Positions 538 to 8,789 of a stretch of DNA of 64,000 bases are shown one piece after another; within the stretch, counting starts at the first letter, position 1; each line of letters opens with the position of its first letter. A program made the translations under genes and the position numbers. The DNA is taken from the sequence record MW749006.1. One strand, written 5' to 3'. Under the pieces are notes generated by a model. It made no database searches. It worked only from the letters and a program-made list of their open reading frames with translations, and was not told the origin of the DNA.

Positions 538-1626
538 TTAGTAGTTAAACATGAGATGGTATAGACTAACTTCATCGTTAGTGTCTATGTAGTTTAGATC
601 TCTTATGTAACGAGGTAATTCAGAGATACCTTCTAAGAGTAAACCATAGTTAGAGTTAGTGGTGGTTGGTTCTACTGTGTTGATTACATAAGTAACAGCT
701 AAGAACTCAGGATCAGATAACTCTTTCTTAACACCAACATAAAGAGGATAGTCTACAACGTTAGTTTTAGAAGGAACGTAGATAGTAAAGTTAGCTATAC
801 CACCATTACAGATGACACTACCGTTCTTCTGGGTAAACAAAGATAAGTTGAGTTCTGGTTTGTAGAGTTCCCAGTAAAGAACAGAACCTACAGGGTAAGC
901 TGATGTATCTATCTCACCTGTGTAAGACTGACCTTTAATCCAATCACACTTAGGAACATCAATCCAAGTATCACTTAAGATCTTTCTACGACTGAGGAAG
1001 TAAAGAAGAGCATCGTATTGCAAGAGTTTATTGTTAGGTATGATCTTAGGTAACTCATCACACTTAAACTTCGACAGTAGAGAGTTCACTAGTTCTAGGA
1101 TGATAGATGTCTGTCCTAGAGTAATAGCTCTCTTAATGCGTTCTAGATGATCTACAATAGGTTCAAAACCATAGATGTCGTCTAAGAGGTGACGGTGTAT
1201 GGTTGGTGTGAACTCCGTTGGTTTATTAAAAACGTTAGTCCAATCTACTGGACGTTCATCACTGATAACAGATTGATACATGTTAGCAATGGCTTTATCA
1301 CTATAAGTAAAATGACCACCTAACGCTTGGTATGTGATTGTGACTTCAGAACTAACACTGGAGTTAATAACAAGGATGACTGAAGCTATCTCTTTACCGT
1401 ACTTAAGAGTAGCTTCTTGGTGTAACTCAACTATCTGATAATCCATACCACGGGTTAGTATATTAGCACCGTCTCGGATAACTAAGCTATTAGCAAAGAA
1501 AGGTCCGAGGTTAGCAGCTATACTACGGGTAGGTCTGTCAGATAGAGAGTGTGGTTCATCAAAAATCTTGTTATTAACATCTGATCCAGTAATATCTAAG
1601 TCTAGTACCGGGATGTTATATGCCAT
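538..1626 (-). CDS. phiKZ-like virion structural protein
   Basis: 362-aa ORF; N-terminal half resembles conserved jumbo-phage tail/baseplate-region proteins; function inferred. Confidence 0.55.
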   Translation of the reverse strand: MAYNIPVLDLDITGSDVNNKIFDEPHSLSDRPTRSIAANLGPFFANSLVIRDGANILTRGMDYQIVELHQEATLKYGKEIASVILVINSSVSSEVTITYQALGGHFTYSDKAIANMYQSVISDERPVDWTNVFNKPTEFTPTIHRHLLDDIYGFEPIVDHLERIKRAITLGQTSIILELVNSLLSKFKCDELPKIIPNNKLLQYDALLYFLSRRKILSDTWIDVPKCDWIKGQSYTGEIDTSAYPVGSVLYWELYKPELNLSLFTQKNGSVICNGGIANFTIYVPSKTNVVDYPLYVGVKKELSDPEFLAVTYVINTVEPTTTNSNYGLLLEGISELPRYIRDLNYIDTNDEVSLYHLMFNY

Positions 1627-2146
1627 TTAGATTTCCTCTATCGTTTCTAACAAAGATCATCTCGTGTTTACTCTTCTTTAGAACAGCTCGTACGAGGGCG
1701 TGTGGGGTGTGGGGTGCTTCGTCGTCTACAATATAACCGATGTTATTGTAAAAGTTACCAGCGAGCTCTGAACAATAGTAAGAGTCATCACTTGAACCTA
1801 TACCAAAGATACCCTTAACAAAATCCCATAGACCGTAAGGTTTACCTAAATTCTTTAGTAAGAGGTCATAATGACGACTGTTTAATTCTAGATCTGTTTT
1901 GATTAGATAGAAATCATCTGTCATGGAAATAGGAAACAGTCTAACTACCGGTGGAGTTGCTTCAACGATGAATTGTCTGTCACCAATAATGGCTACGATA
2001 GCAACGTGTGTAAACTCTGCTTTGAATATTTTTTGATATAGGAATAAAATAAAGTCGAAGAATGAATTAATTTTCGTAGTTTTCCAGGCTAATAGATCAC
2101 CTGATCTCAATTCTGGTTGTATTTTAGATAAGAGGGTAGTAGACAT
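1616..2146 (-). CDS. Permuted papain-like amidase (YiiX/YaeF, NlpC/P60 superfamily)
   Basis: SGDLL...FTHVAIV...IVEA...LGKPYG...YYCSEL: His before Cys, the permuted order; AAGGA SD. Confidence 0.85.
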   Translation of the reverse strand: MSTTLLSKIQPELRSGDLLAWKTTKINSFFDFILFLYQKIFKAEFTHVAIVAIIGDRQFIVEATPPVVRLFPISMTDDFYLIKTDLELNSRHYDLLLKNLGKPYGLWDFVKGIFGIGSSDDSYYCSELAGNFYNNIGYIVDDEAPHTPHALVRAVLKKSKHEMIFVRNDRGNLNGI

Positions 2147-2480
2147 GCCAATTTCCTTAGCTCAATGGGACAATCATACAATTCGGGCTTTAAAACGCTA
2201 TGCTTTAATGTTTGTTTTTATGATGTGTGTTCCTTTAAGTGCTTATAGTAACGGGTATATCCCACCACAAGCGTTTGACTTTAAGTTGAACATTCAAGAA
2301 GAGTTAGATAAACACTTTGATTATATACCGGACTACAACTATGTTCCTGCTTTAATAGAACATGAATCCTGTCTGTCGCTTTCTCATAGTCGCTGTTGGA
2401 ACTCTACTAGTAGATTGAAGACTCAGAGAGAGGAAGGTGCTGGGTTAGGGATTATGGAGAATAATAATTGGGGATTATAG
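2145..2480 (+). pseudogene. Truncated lytic transglycosylase (N-terminal fragment only)
   Basis: Signal-like hydrophobic stretch, then YIPPQAF...EHESC...REEGAGLG (49/65 aa identical to 3300..4226 by manual alignment); homology stops at the GIY-YIG insertion. Confidence 0.75.
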
Positions 2481-3334
2481 TTAACATTGAGAATGCATAT
2501 ATAGATGACATATTTAGATATGTTGTATATCGTATAAAATTCCCAAATGGTAAAAATTATATCGGATGTACTACTAAATCTGTTTCTGTTAGAATAAGTG
2601 CTCATATAAACATTGCTATGAATTCTAAAGTTAGTCATTATAAAATATATAGAGCCATAAATAAATACTGTAAACATGTAATTAATGTAGAGGTTCTAGC
2701 GGGTTATTTAACAAAAGAAGAGATGTTTACTGCTGAACGCAATTACATAGTTATGTATAATAGTTACGAGGAAGGATATAATTCAACTATGGGTGGAGAA
2801 GGAGCTATTGGAATTGTTTTGTCTGATCAAAGTAGAGAAAATATATCTATTGCTCAGACAAAAAGATTTAGTGATCCAGAACAAAGGGAAATAAATTCAA
2901 TAAACACGTTGAAGTGGATAGAGGATAATCCAGAAAAGGTAAAACTTGCTAACAAAAAAAGAACTAAGACTATTCGTAAACTTTCTGTTAGAGAAAATAT
3001 TTCAAAAAGTTTAAAGAAATATTACACCAATAACCCAGACTCTGTTGTTAAGATGAGAGAGGGGTTAGTAAAAAGATATAGTGAAGATGAAGAGTTACGA
3101 ATGGATATAAGTGAGAGTTTAGGAGGTAAACCTATACTTGTTACTGATATGGAAGGGAAGTTTATAAATGCTTATTCCACTCTATCAGAAACAAGTAGAG
3201 AATTAAATTTAAGTTTGGGTAATATCGGTATGGTTATAAGTGGTAAAAGAAACCATACCGGTAATTACAAATTCAAAAGAATAGAAAGGAGTGAGTACGA
3301 TGAAATTAAGAATAGTAATATGGTTAACACTTAG
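2468..3334 (+). mobile_element. Free-standing GIY-YIG homing endonuclease with C-terminal NUMOD1/IENR1-like HTH
   Basis: VVYRIKFPNGKNYIGCT...RISAH...E...GYN core; TTG start with GGAG SD; A-run-rich compared with flanks. Confidence 0.85.
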
Positions 3335-4226
3335 TCTGTTTAGTAAAGGTGTAATGAGTCAAAGTGTTAGTACCTATATACCACCACAGGCGTTTAGTTT
3401 TAAAGATAACATTAAGATGGAATTAGACGCTCACTTTCCTGACATACCTAACTATAATTATCTACCAGCTTTGGTGGAACACGAAAGTTGTATCTCTTTA
3501 AAACATTCTCGCTGTTGGAATAGTAAGTCTCAATTTAAAACTTCCCGAGAAGAAGGCGCGGGTCTTGGAATGGTAACTAAAGCTTTCAACGCTGATGGTA
3601 CTCTTAGGTTCGATACCTTATACGAGATGCGTAACAGATACAAGAATGAGCTCCATGACGCTTCCTGGAGCACTATCTATCAGCGTCCAGACATACAGAT
3701 CCGTATCATAGTTTTAATGCTTAGAGACGACTACAAGCGCTTGTATGACATCAAAGATGAGTGGGTTAGACTTCATATGGTAGATGCTGCTTACAACGGT
3801 GGTTTAGGTGGACTCAATAAAGAGAGACGTACTTGTGGATTGAAAGCTGGATGTGATCCTCAGTTGTGGTTTGGTCATGTGGAGAAGACTTGTATGAAGA
3901 GTACAAAGATACTATACGGTAATCGCTCAGCTTGTGATATAAATCGCGATCATGTTAAAGACGTATTCAACCATAGACTACCTAAGTATCAGAGTCAATA
4001 CTTTACACCTGTGGTTAAGGTAGAGGAAGTTGTAGAAGAGATAGAGGAAGAAATTATTATTATACCACCTGTGTCTCAGGACTTAATCTTTAACCGGGTT
4101 CCCGAGGTGGTTATTAATAGAATTCCTGAAACTCCTGAAGAGACTAAGAAAGGATTCTTTAGTAGAATATGGAGTAAGTTGTTTTCTTCTAACGTAGATA
4201 AACATTGGGGTATTTATGAAGCGTGA
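3300..4226 (+). CDS. Lytic transglycosylase (SLT-like) with N-terminal signal/SAR segment
   Basis: EHES catalytic Glu motif, GAGLG, AAYNGG; ATG 3300 follows AAAGGAG; hydrophobic N-terminus. Confidence 0.85.
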   Translation: MKLRIVIWLTLSLFSKGVMSQSVSTYIPPQAFSFKDNIKMELDAHFPDIPNYNYLPALVEHESCISLKHSRCWNSKSQFKTSREEGAGLGMVTKAFNADGTLRFDTLYEMRNRYKNELHDASWSTIYQRPDIQIRIIVLMLRDDYKRLYDIKDEWVRLHMVDAAYNGGLGGLNKERRTCGLKAGCDPQLWFGHVEKTCMKSTKILYGNRSACDINRDHVKDVFNHRLPKYQSQYFTPVVKVEEVVEEIEEEIIIIPPVSQDLIFNRVPEVVINRIPETPEETKKGFFSRIWSKLFSSNVDKHWGIYEA

Positions 4227-4899
4227 CGCTAAAGTAATTAGTAGTAACCTTTACGAGAAAGGTGGTAAGATCTACTGTAAACAGAAATGTATTATTGAGT
4301 TCCCTAAATGGTACGCTGATAAAGACTTACTTAACATGGCTGAGTTATCTCATGTGTTTGGTGTGTTTGCTATTATCATTGGTGAGACTTACAGTGTGAG
4401 TGTTATTCCTACTATCTTAACCACTAACCCTTTGATCGTTAAAGAGGTAGTTAAGGATGGTGTTGAATACACTCAGTTTCATTACGGTAAAGATGATCCT
4501 ATCTTAGAGAACACTAAAGCTGTTAAGAAAGAAATGGTGAGTTATAGTTTGTTTGAAAGTTTCTTTATGTACAGTAAAGTACCCTGGTATATTGAGTATG
4601 ATGACTTAGTTAGATTGCTGGATAACTTAGCTAAACACGCAGGTAGTAAGTTAGGTAACAACTTGATTGCTAACGAGGTGTTAGTTGGATTCGTTACTCG
4701 TAATGCTAAAGATAAGAAAGTTTACCATAGACAAGTTATTAAAGATCCTTATGTTTACATTGACTTGATGAACGTTTACTATGCAGTAAGTACAGTAACA
4801 AATAAGTTAGCTGGTAACTACTTTCAGAATGCTATTGTGAGTGCTATAGCACAAAAAGAGAAGACTACTACGAAGTTAGAACAACACGCTTGGCGATAG
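4216..4899 (+). CDS. Conserved jumbo-phage hypothetical protein (possibly virion)
   Basis: 227-aa ORF overlapping the SLT stop codon. Confidence 0.6.
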   Translation: MKRDAKVISSNLYEKGGKIYCKQKCIIEFPKWYADKDLLNMAELSHVFGVFAIIIGETYSVSVIPTILTTNPLIVKEVVKDGVEYTQFHYGKDDPILENTKAVKKEMVSYSLFESFFMYSKVPWYIEYDDLVRLLDNLAKHAGSKLGNNLIANEVLVGFVTRNAKDKKVYHRQVIKDPYVYIDLMNVYYAVSTVTNKLAGNYFQNAIVSAIAQKEKTTTKLEQHAWR

Positions 4900-4957: not shown

Positions 4958-6724
4958 TTAGTTGTATTTTATATAAGAGTGTACTTGTGTTTGATGATCA
5001 AAGTTTATATTAGGAAGTTGGAAATTATTAGACCCGTGAAAGGACGGTATGGAACCATCGTAATATTCCGAGTAATCATTCTTACCACCACGGAATTCAG
5101 TGTAAAGGATAGAGTCTAAACTTTCGGTTGTAGATACAGATGCTCCCCCTAGTAAATATATTCTACTACTAGTTACCACTAAATCGTAACTAGATAAAGG
5201 TTTTGGTAATTTCTCTTCTAGTAGAACTAAGTCGCTTAGTGAGCCATCCTCGTTAATTTTTAATCTATAAATATTGTCATAATTAGTTAAATTAATTCTA
5301 CCACCAAATAAATAAACATATTCTTTAGTCACTACACCTTTCAAATAACTATGAGCTATATTCAAAGAAGGATTAGATTGTTCAACTCCTAATGAACCAT
5401 CATCGTCAACTAAGAAATTAAAACCTGAGTTAGTATAATAACCAAGAGAGTAAATTCGTTTACCTGTATTTATTACTACCTGATCTAGAATATGTTTACT
5501 TAAAAACCCATCAATTCTCCATGGACTAATCAACCCGTTTTCTAATATATCTGCAACAACTATTTGATTAGTGGATGTTGTTTCTCCCTCTGGTGTATTT
5601 GCTGCCCCCCGAAAACCACCCATTAAGTAGACTTTAGAGTTAGTGACAAATTGACTTTGCGCTCCAAAATTACCCGGTAGTTTATTTGCCATTACACTCC
5701 AGTCTGTTAAAGATCCATCTGTATTTATATCACAAGTAAATACATCGTAACTACCTCGACCACAAGTCATGTAAATCTTGTTTTTTAGTACAAATAATCT
5801 ACTTAGTTGACTAGTACTCGGTAACTTTTTATCACTAAGAGTCCAAGTTCCAATAACGCCGTTTTTGTCAACTGGAGCGTATTGTATATCGTCTTTTTGA
5901 AATCCTCCAAATAAATATACCATATTTCCAACCAAAAGAGAAGTAGCTCTAGACGTGGGTTTTGCTAAAACTTTAGTATCTATTTTAAAATCAAAAGGTA
6001 TCTGTGAACTATCGTTAAAGAAATGTTGTTGCTTCCAAGGTTCACCGTTAGTTGAAGTAAGGTCTCTTTTAAACTTATCTCCAATAACAGCGTACAAGTC
6101 ACTATACATTGTCTTATCTAAAACACCACCATTACACTTCAAAAAGTTAACTGGGGTAGTAGAGCTTGTCTTACGAATAATATCACCTGTAGTAATGCGG
6201 TAGCTATTAACTAATTCTTCTGCTTGTTTCTTAGTTACCAAGTGAGCTGACTTATATGGATACACCACACTAGTCAAACTACCAATCAACTGCCCACCCG
6301 CTTTAGTTAACAATCCAGTCAAACCAAAACCAGCTAAAGTAGTTGGTTTACCACTTAACTTATCCCAACCTAACTCTGGAATATCAGCACTAACTAAAAC
6401 ACCACCATTTCCAACCACACGTCCTTTATTGTTAACCGCTACTTTATTGTAACGACCAACACTAACACCTGTCTTACTAAATACAATCTGACCATCTTCA
6501 TTACGAAGATCACCACCAAACTCACCTAAACGAGCTACATCTAAAATACCACTAACTACATGACTAACATCAAGACTAGATAAACTACCATCTACGTATT
6601 GTTTAGTAGCTGCTTCCATCGAGTCTTCTGGGTTACGGGACAGGAACAATGGACCCGTCATCACTCCAGCAGCAGCAGTGAAATTGGCTCGGTTAAGAGC
6701 CATGAATGGAGTATTAATACGCAT
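4958..6724 (-). CDS. Tail fibre protein with tail-collar domain and six Kelch-like repeats
   Basis: MTGPLFL...AATKQYVD and KPTTLAGFGL fibre motifs; collar (GDII...FLKCNG...YSDLYAVIG...FQLPN); six VYLFGG-type blades; ATG 6724 has GAGAGGA SD. Confidence 0.8.
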   Translation of the reverse strand: MRINTPFMALNRANFTAAAGVMTGPLFLSRNPEDSMEAATKQYVDGSLSSLDVSHVVSGILDVARLGEFGGDLRNEDGQIVFSKTGVSVGRYNKVAVNNKGRVVGNGGVLVSADIPELGWDKLSGKPTTLAGFGLTGLLTKAGGQLIGSLTSVVYPYKSAHLVTKKQAEELVNSYRITTGDIIRKTSSTTPVNFLKCNGGVLDKTMYSDLYAVIGDKFKRDLTSTNGEPWKQQHFFNDSSQIPFDFKIDTKVLAKPTSRATSLLVGNMVYLFGGFQKDDIQYAPVDKNGVIGTWTLSDKKLPSTSQLSRLFVLKNKIYMTCGRGSYDVFTCDINTDGSLTDWSVMANKLPGNFGAQSQFVTNSKVYLMGGFRGAANTPEGETTSTNQIVVADILENGLISPWRIDGFLSKHILDQVVINTGKRIYSLGYYTNSGFNFLVDDDGSLGVEQSNPSLNIAHSYLKGVVTKEYVYLFGGRINLTNYDNIYRLKINEDGSLSDLVLLEEKLPKPLSSYDLVVTSSRIYLLGGASVSTTESLDSILYTEFRGGKNDYSEYYDGSIPSFHGSNNFQLPNINFDHQTQVHSYIKYN

Positions 6725-6870
6725 AACTATATATCCTCTCAACTGAATTTAACCTAACCAAACACAACATTCGCTAGGTTCTAAAGGGAAACCACAGAAT
6801 TGAATCAACACACATACCTTTTAAATATATACAGACATTACATGGATTACACTCTTTAAGGGAGACTCAC

Positions 6871-7992
6871 GTGAAATATATAGTTGTCTCAGACATACAC
6901 TTAGGTCACATCAGAACACCAACTTCACACATCATCAATTCTTTCACTAAGACAGTCTTCACTGAGAAGAATAAAGATATAGATGTATTCTTTATAGCAG
7001 GTGATCTATTCGATAGACTACTAGACTTTAACTCTATAGATGTTAGAGAGATCCTTAAGTTTCTAGATACACTATTAACTTACTGCACAATCAACAACAT
7101 CAAACTAAGAGTTCTAGAAGGTACTCCTTCCCATGACTGGCAACAACCTGAAGTCATAGTTAAGTTAAATGAACTGCGTGAAAACAAATGTGATCTACGT
7201 TACCACAAGTTTCTAGATATAGAATACATTCCAGAGTTCAACAAACACATTCTCTATATACCAGACGAGTGGTCTAACTGTCACCTAGACATAGAAACAC
7301 AGATCAAAGAGAAACTACAAGAACATTCTATCTCTAAGGTAGACATAGCTATCTTACACGGAGCATTCACTTACCAAGCTCCTATCGCTAAGTATGCAGG
7401 TTTCTTATATAAAGAAGATTACTTCCTTAATCTAGTTCGTGGTTTCATTCATATAGGACACTACCACACTCATACCTTTTTCGATAGAATCATTGCTCAA
7501 GGTAGTCTAGATCGAATGGCTCACGGTGAAGAAGAGTCTAAAGGTTATGTTAAAGTAGAAGGAACTAACTGGACGTTCATTGAGAACCCCAACGCTTACG
7601 TCTACCGAACGATCAACGTAGTAGCCACCACAACTATCAATACGCTAGACAAACACATCCAGCAGCTTCCTAAGGGATCTCACGTTCGTTTGGTTCTATC
7701 TAAAGATCATCCGCTTAATATAGCTTTCCAAGATGTTAAACTTCGTTACTTAGATTATCATATACGTAAGCTTAATAAAGAAACGTTATCGGAAAGTAAT
7801 GAAATCACATATATAGCACTTAGTGAAGATCTAGAGATGTCTGATAACTATGTATTAGACAAGAACATACACAACACCTTAAAGAATCTAGTTTTATCTA
7901 AATACCAACTTAATCAAACTGAACAGAATAAGTTCTTAGGTTATATTAGTATCTTAGAAAACATAGTTGAAGTTGAGGAGGAGGCTATTTAA
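6871..7992 (+). CDS. sbcD: SbcD/Mre11-like metallophosphoesterase nuclease
   Basis: SDIHLGH, AGDLFD, GTPSHD, LHG, IGHYH motifs; SbcC partner at 49427..51859. Confidence 0.9.
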   Translation: MKYIVVSDIHLGHIRTPTSHIINSFTKTVFTEKNKDIDVFFIAGDLFDRLLDFNSIDVREILKFLDTLLTYCTINNIKLRVLEGTPSHDWQQPEVIVKLNELRENKCDLRYHKFLDIEYIPEFNKHILYIPDEWSNCHLDIETQIKEKLQEHSISKVDIAILHGAFTYQAPIAKYAGFLYKEDYFLNLVRGFIHIGHYHTHTFFDRIIAQGSLDRMAHGEEESKGYVKVEGTNWTFIENPNAYVYRTINVVATTTINTLDKHIQQLPKGSHVRLVLSKDHPLNIAFQDVKLRYLDYHIRKLNKETLSESNEITYIALSEDLEMSDNYVLDKNIHNTLKNLVLSKYQLNQTEQNKFLGYISILENIVEVEEEAI

Positions 7993-8789
7993 TGAATTTG
8001 CTATTAACAACTAGAGCTATGTCTGGATTCCCTGTGTCTATAGGAACAGGTTTAGCTCTAGAGACATTGTTTCAACCAACACAAGACGTTACAGATGAAG
8101 GTAGACAAGTCACTAGAATGGAGGACTTAACACAGTACTCTTTGTACGTGTTTAACCTATCTACACTACTACGTAACTTAATAAGTACCTTACCTTCTAA
8201 AGAGTTGTTTCGTATCCCTCGTAAAGAGATATTAGCTACTCTGATAGATGAGATGGACTTTATCACTAACCACTTTGATGCACAGTCTATAGAAGTCAAG
8301 TTCTATGTACATACCTATAAGTTTGTTAAGGATGTGTATAAAGATCCAAAGTACTTGAGGAAACCTTCTACTGACCAACAACACTTAGTAGATAGTATAA
8401 TGGAATACTGTCTTGAGAAACTAAAGAAAGAAGAATCAGTCTCTACTTTCCATAAAGATATCAAGTATGAGAAACAAGACACTGTGCTTCTCTTCACACA
8501 CGTTCCGTTTGATCTACTTAGTCACGGTAGGTTTATGAAACTAGACCTTTTAGAATCTCACACAGGACTGATTAAGACACGTAAAGATTGGTGGTCTAAG
8601 TACTATCCTATTCCTAAAGAGGATATGTCGTTTATGCCCTTTCAGGAATACGCTTTATCTATCTTCGGAGATAAGATAATGTTTAAACCAGCTCCTTTAG
8701 CAGAACGTAAAGCTCTTCTAGAAATGATGAGAAAGAAAGGTGTGAATCCTTTAACCTCTGAACTCGGTATGATGTTCCTGAATAAATAG
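7992..8789 (+). CDS. Conserved Chimalliviridae core protein (phiKZ gp66-like position)
   Basis: FPVSIGTGLALE motif; synteny immediately after SbcD. Confidence 0.6.
   Translation: MNLLLTTRAMSGFPVSIGTGLALETLFQPTQDVTDEGRQVTRMEDLTQYSLYVFNLSTLLRNLISTLPSKELFRIPRKEILATLIDEMDFITNHFDAQSIEVKFYVHTYKFVKDVYKDPKYLRKPSTDQQHLVDSIMEYCLEKLKKEESVSTFHKDIKYEKQDTVLLFTHVPFDLLSHGRFMKLDLLESHTGLIKTRKDWWSKYYPIPKEDMSFMPFQEYALSIFGDKIMFKPAPLAERKALLEMMRKKGVNPLTSELGMMFLNK

Follow-up and report, generated by a model that had tools for sequence, protein, structure and literature searches.

Organization of the Locus

The window considered here is a stretch of 64,000 nucleotides (nt) from the 200-kb genome of the jumbo phage Bacillus phage vB_BspM_AgentSmith (window coordinate plus 124000 gives the coordinate in MW749006.1), in which a probable transglycosylase gene is present in two forms on either side of an endonuclease gene. 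The locus comprises, in order, a truncated transglycosylase open reading frame (ORF; 2145–2480), a GIY-YIG/NUMOD endonuclease (2468–3334) and a complete transglycosylase (3300–4226), which are labeled in GenBank as a ‘putative lytic murein transglycosylase’, a ‘putative endonuclease’ and again a ‘putative lytic murein transglycosylase’. An earlier note on this DNA, made from the sequence alone, had proposed that the endonuclease inserts in mid-gene and supplies a replacement for the N-terminal half that it displaces. Following this up, we consider it highly probable that window 2450–3572 is a mobile cassette, which combines a free-standing homing endonuclease with a replacement 5′ piece of the invaded gene. 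The features of the locus, with the two forms of the transglycosylase gene termed copy 1 and copy 2 and the Shine–Dalgarno sequence abbreviated as SD, are as follows:

2145–2480, plus strand: copy 1, the resident 5′ portion of the transglycosylase gene, now displaced, 111 amino acids (aa), resident up to base 2449
2366–2449, plus strand: 84-nt patch at the 3′ end of copy 1, abutting the insert, not resident-like by its mismatches with the relative L004
2450–3572, plus strand: probable mobile cassette, 1123 nt, with the endonuclease gene and the beginning of a foreign transglycosylase allele (SD, ATG and signal peptide included, first 91 codons), delimited by empty-site alignments with L004 and L023
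2468–3334, plus strand: free-standing GIY-YIG homing endonuclease gene, 288 aa, TTG start, assigned by domain, profile and residue matches
3300–4226, plus strand: copy 2, complete chimeric transglycosylase gene, 308 aa, an intact ORF
1616–2146, minus strand: left neighbor, C92 permuted-papain-like amidase family, 176 aa (Pfam PF05708, 27.7 bits)
4216–4899, plus strand: right neighbor, virion structural protein, 227 aa (PHROG 2926, E = 3e-47)

Copy 1 extends from a signal peptide through the catalytic E-S motif to GAGLG. The earlier note had it end there, which is true of its likeness to the gene, the last shared residue being G102 and the last shared base 2449, but not of its ORF, which continues for nine further codons (IMENNNWGL) read from the insert. 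Its stop codon (2478–2480) gives a 13-nt overlap with the endonuclease, whose TTG start lies at 2468, eight nt downstream of its own SD (GGAG, 2456–2459), and which is a separate ORF in a frame different from that of both gene copies. As the earlier note had read it, the 3′ end of the endonuclease gene holds the SD of copy 2 (AAGGAG, 3286–3291) and its ATG. The latter is 35 nt inside the endonuclease ORF. Copy 2 is itself composite, with 3300–3572 borne by the cassette and 3573–4226 resident. No terminator-like site was found between the three ORFs, which fits a single transcript and a promoter-less endonuclease, as in many T4 endonucleases (PMC2988022). A scan for sigma-70 promoters was uninformative (17 sites against 11 expected). 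Phages of the phiKZ-like type use their own polymerases.

The duplicated segment spans 65 aa (YIPPQAF...GAGLG), of which 49 are identical between the copies, as the earlier note had counted; BLASTP aligns them with 50 of 74 residues identical (E = 9e-36). The many synonymous differences and the different signal peptides that it had also pointed out are likewise real: the signal peptides are unrelated, and over the 195 duplicated nt only 126 are identical, with proportions of synonymous and nonsynonymous differences (pS and pN) of 0.81 and 0.24, the former implying that synonymous sites are saturated between the two copies. The repeat is hence a diverged duplicate of a conserved protein segment and not a recent tandem copy. 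Nor is the arrangement an assembly artefact, because the independent metagenome assemblies L003, L014, L015 and L016 display it too.

The Endonuclease and Its Target

The endonuclease can be assigned to the GIY-YIG class of the I-TevI/Seg type, with a predicted N-terminal catalytic domain and a C-terminal NUMOD1/I-HmuI-like helix-turn-helix. Among the Pfam models, NUMOD1 (PF07453) is matched at 26 bits (cut-off 22.8) and PF22083 at 26.8 bits (cut-off 27), and the NCBIfam group I intron endonuclease family TIGR01453 aligns over residues 20–270 with 54.6 bits, just under its cut-off of 56.05. PHROG 314 and PHROG 5123 also match, the latter being the ‘homing endonuclease with GIY-YIG motif’ group (3.8e-10). 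A search of the PDB with the single endonuclease sequence returned no match; a profile of the endonuclease and its relatives matches the I-TevI catalytic domain (1MK0) over residues 5–92 (E = 5e-4) as well as the DNA-binding domain of I-HmuI (1U3E), and Y21, Y31, G33, R42, E90 and N105 are invariant across the family alignment. The gene appears to be free-standing, as it has its own SD and TTG and shows no self-splicing intron or intein. Its start is conserved in 46%-identical relatives. In the carrier L020 (L020:1–60, window-equivalent 2420–2470), GAAG replaces GGAG in the ribosome-binding site of the endonuclease and GTG replaces TTG, changes that may reflect tuning of its expression or the onset of decay. 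The gene is single-copy in the AgentSmith genome; its best match in INPHARED has 27–38% identity, and neither the endonuclease nor AgentSmith has a close relative in that collection.

We predict that the invaded gene encodes a lytic transglycosylase of the endolysin type, an assignment that is likely but not proven. Its catalytic E62-S63 pair is invariant among 120 homologues, and in Yua-like phages of Pseudomonas and Bordetella homologues are annotated as endolysin or signal-arrest-release (SAR) endolysin transglycosylase. The protein has no sequence match in Pfam, NCBIfam or the PDB, including by a profile search of the PDB. With an AlphaFold model of copy 2 (predicted local distance difference test score, pLDDT, 65), the top 31 Foldseek matches in the PDB are all MltF, MltE or g-type (goose-type) lysozyme, with modest scores (probability 0.57–0.99, E = 0.03–0.8, template modeling (TM) score 0.27–0.57).

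The Uninvaded Allele and Transfer of the Cassette

A protein search of metagenomes recovered close relatives of the locus, here given L numbers. L004 and L023 have only a single transglycosylase gene (of 296 or 288 aa) between the C92 gene and the structural gene, without an endonuclease, and L024 has the same order, again with a single transglycosylase and no endonuclease. The sequence of L004 tracks copy 1 of the window to ...GGTGCTGGGTTAGG (TTAGG) and then continues with TCAA GTAACTAAAGC..., which corresponds to the window from 3573 onward; L023 is alike. The 1123 nt of window 2450–3572 thus stand in place of four nt (TCAA) of the uninvaded allele, and the junction (2449/2450) falls after the second base of the Gly codon in ...GAGLG. 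The earlier note had predicted that endonuclease-free relatives would have a single gene that is copy 1-like in its 5′ half and continues as the 3′ half of copy 2; L004 and L023 have precisely such a gene, the switch being at 3573. Copy 1 shares 61 of 65 aa (94%) and 168 of 195 nt (86%) with the 5′ half of L004, as against 52 of 65 aa (80%) and 131 of 195 nt (67%) for the 5′ piece of copy 2, the 3′ part of which is 94% identical to L004 at the aa level. The nearest relatives of the window flanks (L004 and L023, 94–100%) are without the insert. One carrier, L015, and the uninvaded L023 derive from the same sample (ERZ27298659).

The cassette has moved as a unit between diverged genomes. Over 2445–3589, the window and L003 are identical at 1143 of 1145 positions, and L016 is alike, whereas their flanks have diverged, with 82% identity in the C92 gene, 76–82% in copy 1, 79% in the 3′ half and 82% in the structural gene. 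The insert thus differs by 0.2% and the flanks by about 20%. This near-identity and the empty site of L004 and L023 together support the proposal of a mid-gene insertion with a replacement N-terminal half. The cassette is found in L003, L005 and L014–L022, that of L014 and L015 being 97.9% identical to the window, and it occupies at least four flank contexts: that of the window, that shared by L003, L014, L015 and L016 (98–100% identical to one another), that of L017 and that of L020. Mixtures of these occur, L017 having a window-like copy 1 and an L004-like right flank, and L020 an L004-like end of copy 1; L018/L019 and L005 have further right flanks. By cluster look-up, an endonuclease protein one residue off that of the window is present on at least 10 contigs from several studies, and the ORF is intact, with its catalytic residues conserved, on at least 10 contigs. 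The left junction (2449/2450) is identical in every contig reaching that point, and four contigs of one study begin at base-equivalent 2448, as expected for an assembly-graph branch there. In composition, the GC content of third codon positions is 0.22 in the endonuclease, 0.28 in the cassette 5′ piece and 0.32–0.37 in resident genes. Exact scans for the left end of the cassette in Joint Genome Institute (JGI) metagenome contigs and in IMG/VR gave nothing, and protein-guided IMG/VR scans with the transglycosylase and the right neighbor gene gave only one distant locus, or nothing. Within the 64-kb window, an all-against-all ORF comparison revealed no second case of this architecture.

Apparent Traces of Break Repair and Allele Replacement

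Upstream of 2366, the DNA of copy 1 is 96–100% identical to L004 and L023. The adjoining 84 nt (2366–2449) have 21 mismatches with L004 (24 in 87 nt with the junction bases 2450–2452 included), against 34 in the 750 nt of 1616–2365, an excess with a Fisher p of about 1e-10. This patch begins at the third base of the catalytic Glu codon and is also present in the carrier L017, and we interpret it as a probable co-conversion tract from the copy 1 of a donor. The right boundary of the cassette varies relative to the junction (J), lying at J to J+17 in the window, L003 and L016–L021, at about J-16 in L005, and at J-47 in L014 and L015. In the latter two, copy 2 from 3526 on is resident sequence, which matches their own copy 1 and then continues ...GGTTTAGGTCAAGTAACT. 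They are not assembly chimeras, because they come from independent assemblies (k = 127 and k = 119) and have only 13 nt in common at the switch. The patch and the shifting right boundary look like the co-conversion tracts of double-strand-break repair.

The endonuclease-free L024 (L024:4001–4891) adds a further facet, for its flanks are 98–100% identical to L004 and the 5′ half of its gene is a third allele (58–74% identical). The final ~75 nt of this allele, which extend ~23 nt beyond the junction, equal the cassette, GGCGCGGGTCTTGGAATG included. This could be an allele that resists the endonuclease while lacking it, or one related to the lineage of the donor. Taken together, the patch, the boundary shifts and the L024 allele mark the region around the catalytic codons as a hot spot of allele replacement in the population. 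We also looked for decay of copy 1 and saw little: its odd residues CLSLSH recur in the functional allele of L024 and are therefore allelic variation. The copy 1 of L017 has its end shifted out of frame by an insertion of 1 nt, and its stop comes to lie just before the TTG.

Immunity and the Position of Cleavage

The earlier note had also suggested that the cassette confers immunity by a recoded site (ggtgctgggttaggg versus ggcgcgggtcttgga). This part is not supported. Synonymous divergence is saturated along the whole duplicate and not just at the site: the two copies differ at 6, 13, 10, 10, 11 and 13 positions in successive 30-nt intervals and at 6 in the final 15 nt, and this even spread speaks against any special recoding at GAGLG. 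Furthermore, the carriers L014 and L015 keep an intact endonuclease together with the resident, unrecoded GGTGCAGGTTTAGGTCAAGTAACT from window-equivalent 3526. A speculative lead comes from the codons of the E-S-C residues, which are GAG AGT TGT in uninvaded alleles. Copy 2 has GAA AGT TGT, and the two kinds of copy 1 both have GAA TCC TGT, such that every sequence coexisting with the endonuclease reads GAA at the catalytic Glu codon. A candidate cleavage site may be placed within about 90 nt of the junction. One such candidate, an I-TevI-like CNNNG located 22–26 nt upstream of the junction in uninvaded alleles, amounts to no more than a lead, as it is also present in copy 2 of L014 and L015 and would leave immunity unexplained.

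Proposed Mechanism and Alternative Explanations

We propose that the cassette endonuclease effects site-specific cleavage of the endonuclease-less allele and is thereby preferentially inherited, i.e., that it homes; the indirect signs of this are the occurrence of one cassette in four or more diverged backgrounds, its fixed junctions and the short conversion tracts next to it. In a mixed infection, it would cut the uninvaded allele within roughly 90 nt of the junction, and the carrier genome would serve as the template for repairing the break, homology being provided on the left by copy 1 and on the right by the 3′ part of the gene. Repair would bring in the endonuclease along with the foreign 5′ piece, the resident 5′ part would stay upstream as the truncated copy 1, and the cassette 5′ piece would be joined in frame to the resident 3′ part, yielding the complete chimeric copy 2 with neither intron nor intein. 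As it has no visible promoter of its own, the endonuclease is probably translated at a low level from its TTG, in coupling with the termination of the copy 1 ORF.

Several observations weigh against this proposal. In L014 and L015, the functional copy is unrecoded across the junction, and recognition of the insertion site in the manner of I-TevI would mean self-cutting; either the recognition or cleavage site is upstream of J-47, where copy 2 is cassette-type in all carriers, or self-cutting is tolerated. Copy 1 in carriers retains most of any target upstream of the junction. The endonuclease of the window on its own falls below the Pfam GIY-YIG model (PF01541), which is reached by four of its relatives and by the family profile. 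A donor lineage for the foreign 5′ piece was not found in a search limited to that piece, the best non-carrier match being 74%. What the sequences show is the architecture, the empty site, the transfer as a unit between diverged genomes and an intact endonuclease; the cleavage activity and its position, the basis of self-immunity and the expression of the endonuclease are inferred.

The same data can be confronted with explanations that dispense with cleavage. It is conceivable, but in our judgment unlikely, that the cassette spreads by ordinary homologous recombination between co-infecting relatives, with the endonuclease inactive or cutting elsewhere and thus hitch-hiking. Mosaicism is indeed common at this locus, as witnessed by the replaced 5′ half of L024 and by L017, with its window-like left and L004-like right, and the tolerance of an unrecoded junction by L014 and L015 would find a ready place in such a scenario. 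However, recombination of this kind is expected to carry long donor flanks, and the near-identity of the window and L003 stops at most 5 nt to the left and at most 17 nt to the right of the insert; the left junction is moreover the same in all backgrounds, and the endonuclease ORF persists intact with its conserved catalytic residues on the contigs counted above. That same invariance of the junction might point to a one-off event, namely a tandem partial duplication or an illegitimate insertion inherited vertically since. Vertical inheritance is contradicted by the 0.2% divergence of the insert against about 20% in the flanks, and the nearest flank relatives, L004 and L023, are without the insert, making a single origin of this type very improbable.

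An equally slim chance attaches to the endonuclease and the 5′ piece of copy 2 lying within a self-splicing intron, from which copy 1 would be spliced to the 3′ part. In its favor, the best curated match of the endonuclease, TIGR01453, is a ‘group I intron endonuclease’ family, but the idea meets several obstacles. No Rfam family, including Intron_gpI, matches either strand of 1900–4400 at E ≤ 1; the intact SD, ATG, signal peptide and catalytic motif of copy 2 would be pointless inside an intron; and copy 1 is frameshifted near its end in L017. The endonuclease thus does not appear to be encoded by a group I intron, the host gene being restored instead, on this evidence, by the duplicated 5′ piece. 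The claim of the earlier note that the insertion is splicing-free fares well: the search revealed no signal of a group I or II intron, and copy 2 is equipped with an SD, an ATG and a signal peptide of its own. A different suggestion is compatible with the homing mechanism and would merely add to it: copy 1 might be kept as a leader ORF that feeds the weak TTG, or as the left homology arm. The overlap of its stop (2478–2480) with the TTG at 2468, the L017 insertion, which shifts the stop and keeps the arrangement, and an ORF that is open in the window, L003 and L014–L016 are all in keeping with this. Still, the insertions look recent, so that an open ORF requires no selection, and the more distant L006–L010 (see below) retain only a 24-nt candidate relic of the left half of the gene upstream of the endonuclease; we therefore regard such a role as possible but doubtful.

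Older History of the Endonuclease Lineage

Endonucleases that are 45–47% identical to that of the window (P0122–P0124) are found in the syntenic phages L006–L010 directly upstream of the transglycosylase gene, with which they overlap at its start. There, the endonuclease lies between an unrelated ORF of 90 aa and a complete transglycosylase gene, and the adjacency of such distant endonucleases to the same gene indicates a long association with this target. The matching endonuclease-free state is provided by L012, in which a 91-aa ORF is followed by the gene, the exchanged block being the endonuclease plus the whole gene. A recombination boundary in mid-gene was also sought between L006/L007 and L012: none is present at the junction, the whole gene and the endonuclease having been exchanged.

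When the 24-nt left half of the junction (GAAGAAGGTGCTGGGTTAGGTCAA) is compared with the entire contigs of L006, L007, L008 and L010, its best match in each agrees at 16–17 of 24 positions and lies close to the endonuclease gene, its end being no more than about 30 nt before the start codon and inside the insert as set by L012 (e.g., L006:4257–4280, L008:1342–1365 and L010:233–256). It is situated just upstream of the ribosome-binding site, and its other frame reads E*GLGLGQ. In shuffled L006 sequences, a match of at least 17 positions arises anywhere in 4% of trials, and the argument accordingly rests on the coincidence of position. These 24 nt could be the relic of a lost copy 1, which would mean that this lineage was formerly inserted in mid-gene; the observation is suggestive but not proof.

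From this we tentatively raise the possibility, without favoring it, that carrying a replacement gene half is an old and stable way of life of the endonuclease lineage and not a recent accident. If true, mid-gene invasion would have occurred repeatedly, with decay of the displaced 5′ copy leaving behind an apparently intergenic endonuclease, and the attendant arms race would drive synonymous diversification and allele swapping at the catalytic codons of a lysis gene (e.g., the endonuclease-less L024). As a separate observation, L012 displays two different HNH_3 endonuclease genes (L012:5029–6291 and 7057–8127) flanking the structural gene downstream of the transglycosylase, which suggests that the neighborhood is a hot spot for several endonuclease families.

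Neighboring Genes

The C92 gene is also found to the left of the transglycosylase in L003, L004, L014–L016, L023 and L024 and is syntenic in all relatives. Its start codon on the minus strand overlaps that of copy 1 on the plus strand (CATG, window 2144–2147), as it does in uninvaded relatives, and the promoter of either gene must therefore lie within the coding region of the other. The right neighbor (4216–4899) is similarly syntenic in all relatives, and its 26–29% identical homologues are annotated as virion structural proteins in phiKZ-like jumbo phages whose hosts are Gram-negative. According to the record, the host is a Bacillus. However, the lysis-type gene encodes an N-terminal signal that is Sec/SAR-like and has as homologues the endolysins of phages from Pseudomonas, Bordetella and Stenotrophomonas, and the structural neighbor is shared with the phiKZ-like group just named. 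The host assignment or the affiliation of the phage deserves a check.

Further to the right, the minus-strand gene at 4958–6742 is annotated as tail-fibre, and the product of its L006 counterpart has matches to Collar, Kelch and beta-propeller repeats. Elsewhere in the window there are three pairs of neighboring paralogous ORFs with 27–38% identity (54764–55336/55340–55933; 61747–62673/63516–63998, minus strand; and 33270–33662/34071–34574), which have no endonuclease between the copies and are unrelated to the cassette.

Comparison with Known Systems

Free-standing homing endonucleases of phages are thought to avoid harm by an intergenic position, by residence in introns or inteins or, rarely, by splitting a gene into two working polypeptides. 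The AgentSmith locus points to a further way in a phage, in which the element inserts within a gene and supplies a replacement for the half that it pushes aside. The closest parallel is seen in the gene hybrids created by mobile endonuclease ORFs (mORFs) in fungal mitochondria, which are known from atp6 of Allomyces macrogynus, atp6, atp9, cox2 and nad3 of Glomus, atp9 of Rhizopus and cox2 of Mortierella (PMC3630166). In both, an endonuclease gene and a piece of the invaded gene travel jointly, the inserted piece replaces the native one, the displaced native duplicate adjoins it and no intron is involved. In both, too, close relatives resemble the native piece much more than they do the foreign one (91–98% versus 64–81% nt identity for mORFs; 86% versus 67% over the 195-nt repeat in the phage). 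They differ in polarity. In mORFs, the foreign piece is C-terminal and precedes the endonuclease, with which it is often in frame, and the native 3′ end is left downstream. In the phage cassette, the foreign piece is N-terminal, includes an SD, an ATG and a signal peptide of its own and follows the endonuclease, whereas the native 5′ end is left upstream. The mORFs, furthermore, reside in an organelle genome and mostly encode LAGLIDADG enzymes, in contrast to the GIY-YIG enzyme of the phage. Thus, the phage element works like the mORF hybrids with mirrored polarity but is not a member of the mORF group.

Its components are reminiscent of the free-standing GIY-YIG Seg endonucleases of T4, which undergo intronless homing (e.g., SegF beside gene 56 and SegG beside gene 32; PMC2988022). 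As in that system, a promoter-less GIY-YIG cassette stands beside its target gene (PMC2988022). In T4, the naive gene is cut, repair copies the endonuclease with adjacent donor sequence, and immunity derives from differences of the donor allele (PMC2988022). The Seg genes are intergenic, however, and donor sequence replaces that of the recipient without duplication; here, the endonuclease and a half-gene are intragenic and a truncated copy is left behind. The distant relatives in L006–L010 have the T4-like intergenic arrangement. Intron-less insertions that split genes are also known, namely mobE, which interrupts nrdA in Aeromonas phage Aeh1, and mobA, which lies between genes 39 and 60 of T4 (PMC2988022; PMC10448857). 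These share with the AgentSmith cassette a free-standing endonuclease gene placed within the coding part of a phage gene that stays functional, and the absence of RNA or protein splicing. They differ in that two polypeptides assemble and nothing is duplicated, whereas here there is one complete chimeric polypeptide and the displaced half is redundant.

The earlier note had implied that the strategy is unprecedented. Our literature searches turned up no phage example of an endonuclease with a duplicated piece of its target gene, although their coverage is incomplete and this is only absence of evidence, and such duplications go unmentioned in a review of the field (PMC2988022) and in a recent survey of phage nuclease islands (PMC10448857). 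The idea is less new than implied, given that mitochondrial endonuclease ORFs with replacement gene pieces are known (PMC3630166). For this locus, nature provides an unusually complete series of alleles in the naive, the invaded and the partly converted state, with one pair of them occurring together in a single sample, which makes homing, co-conversion and the evolution of resistance testable in a phiKZ-related jumbo phage. It also suggests a possible origin for some apparently intergenic endonucleases and for some mosaic gene halves, and connects the ‘gene hybrid’ phenomenon of mitochondria with the biology of phages. Mitochondria already offer elements of this kind, and T4 their components; what appears to be new here is the phage form and the mirrored polarity.

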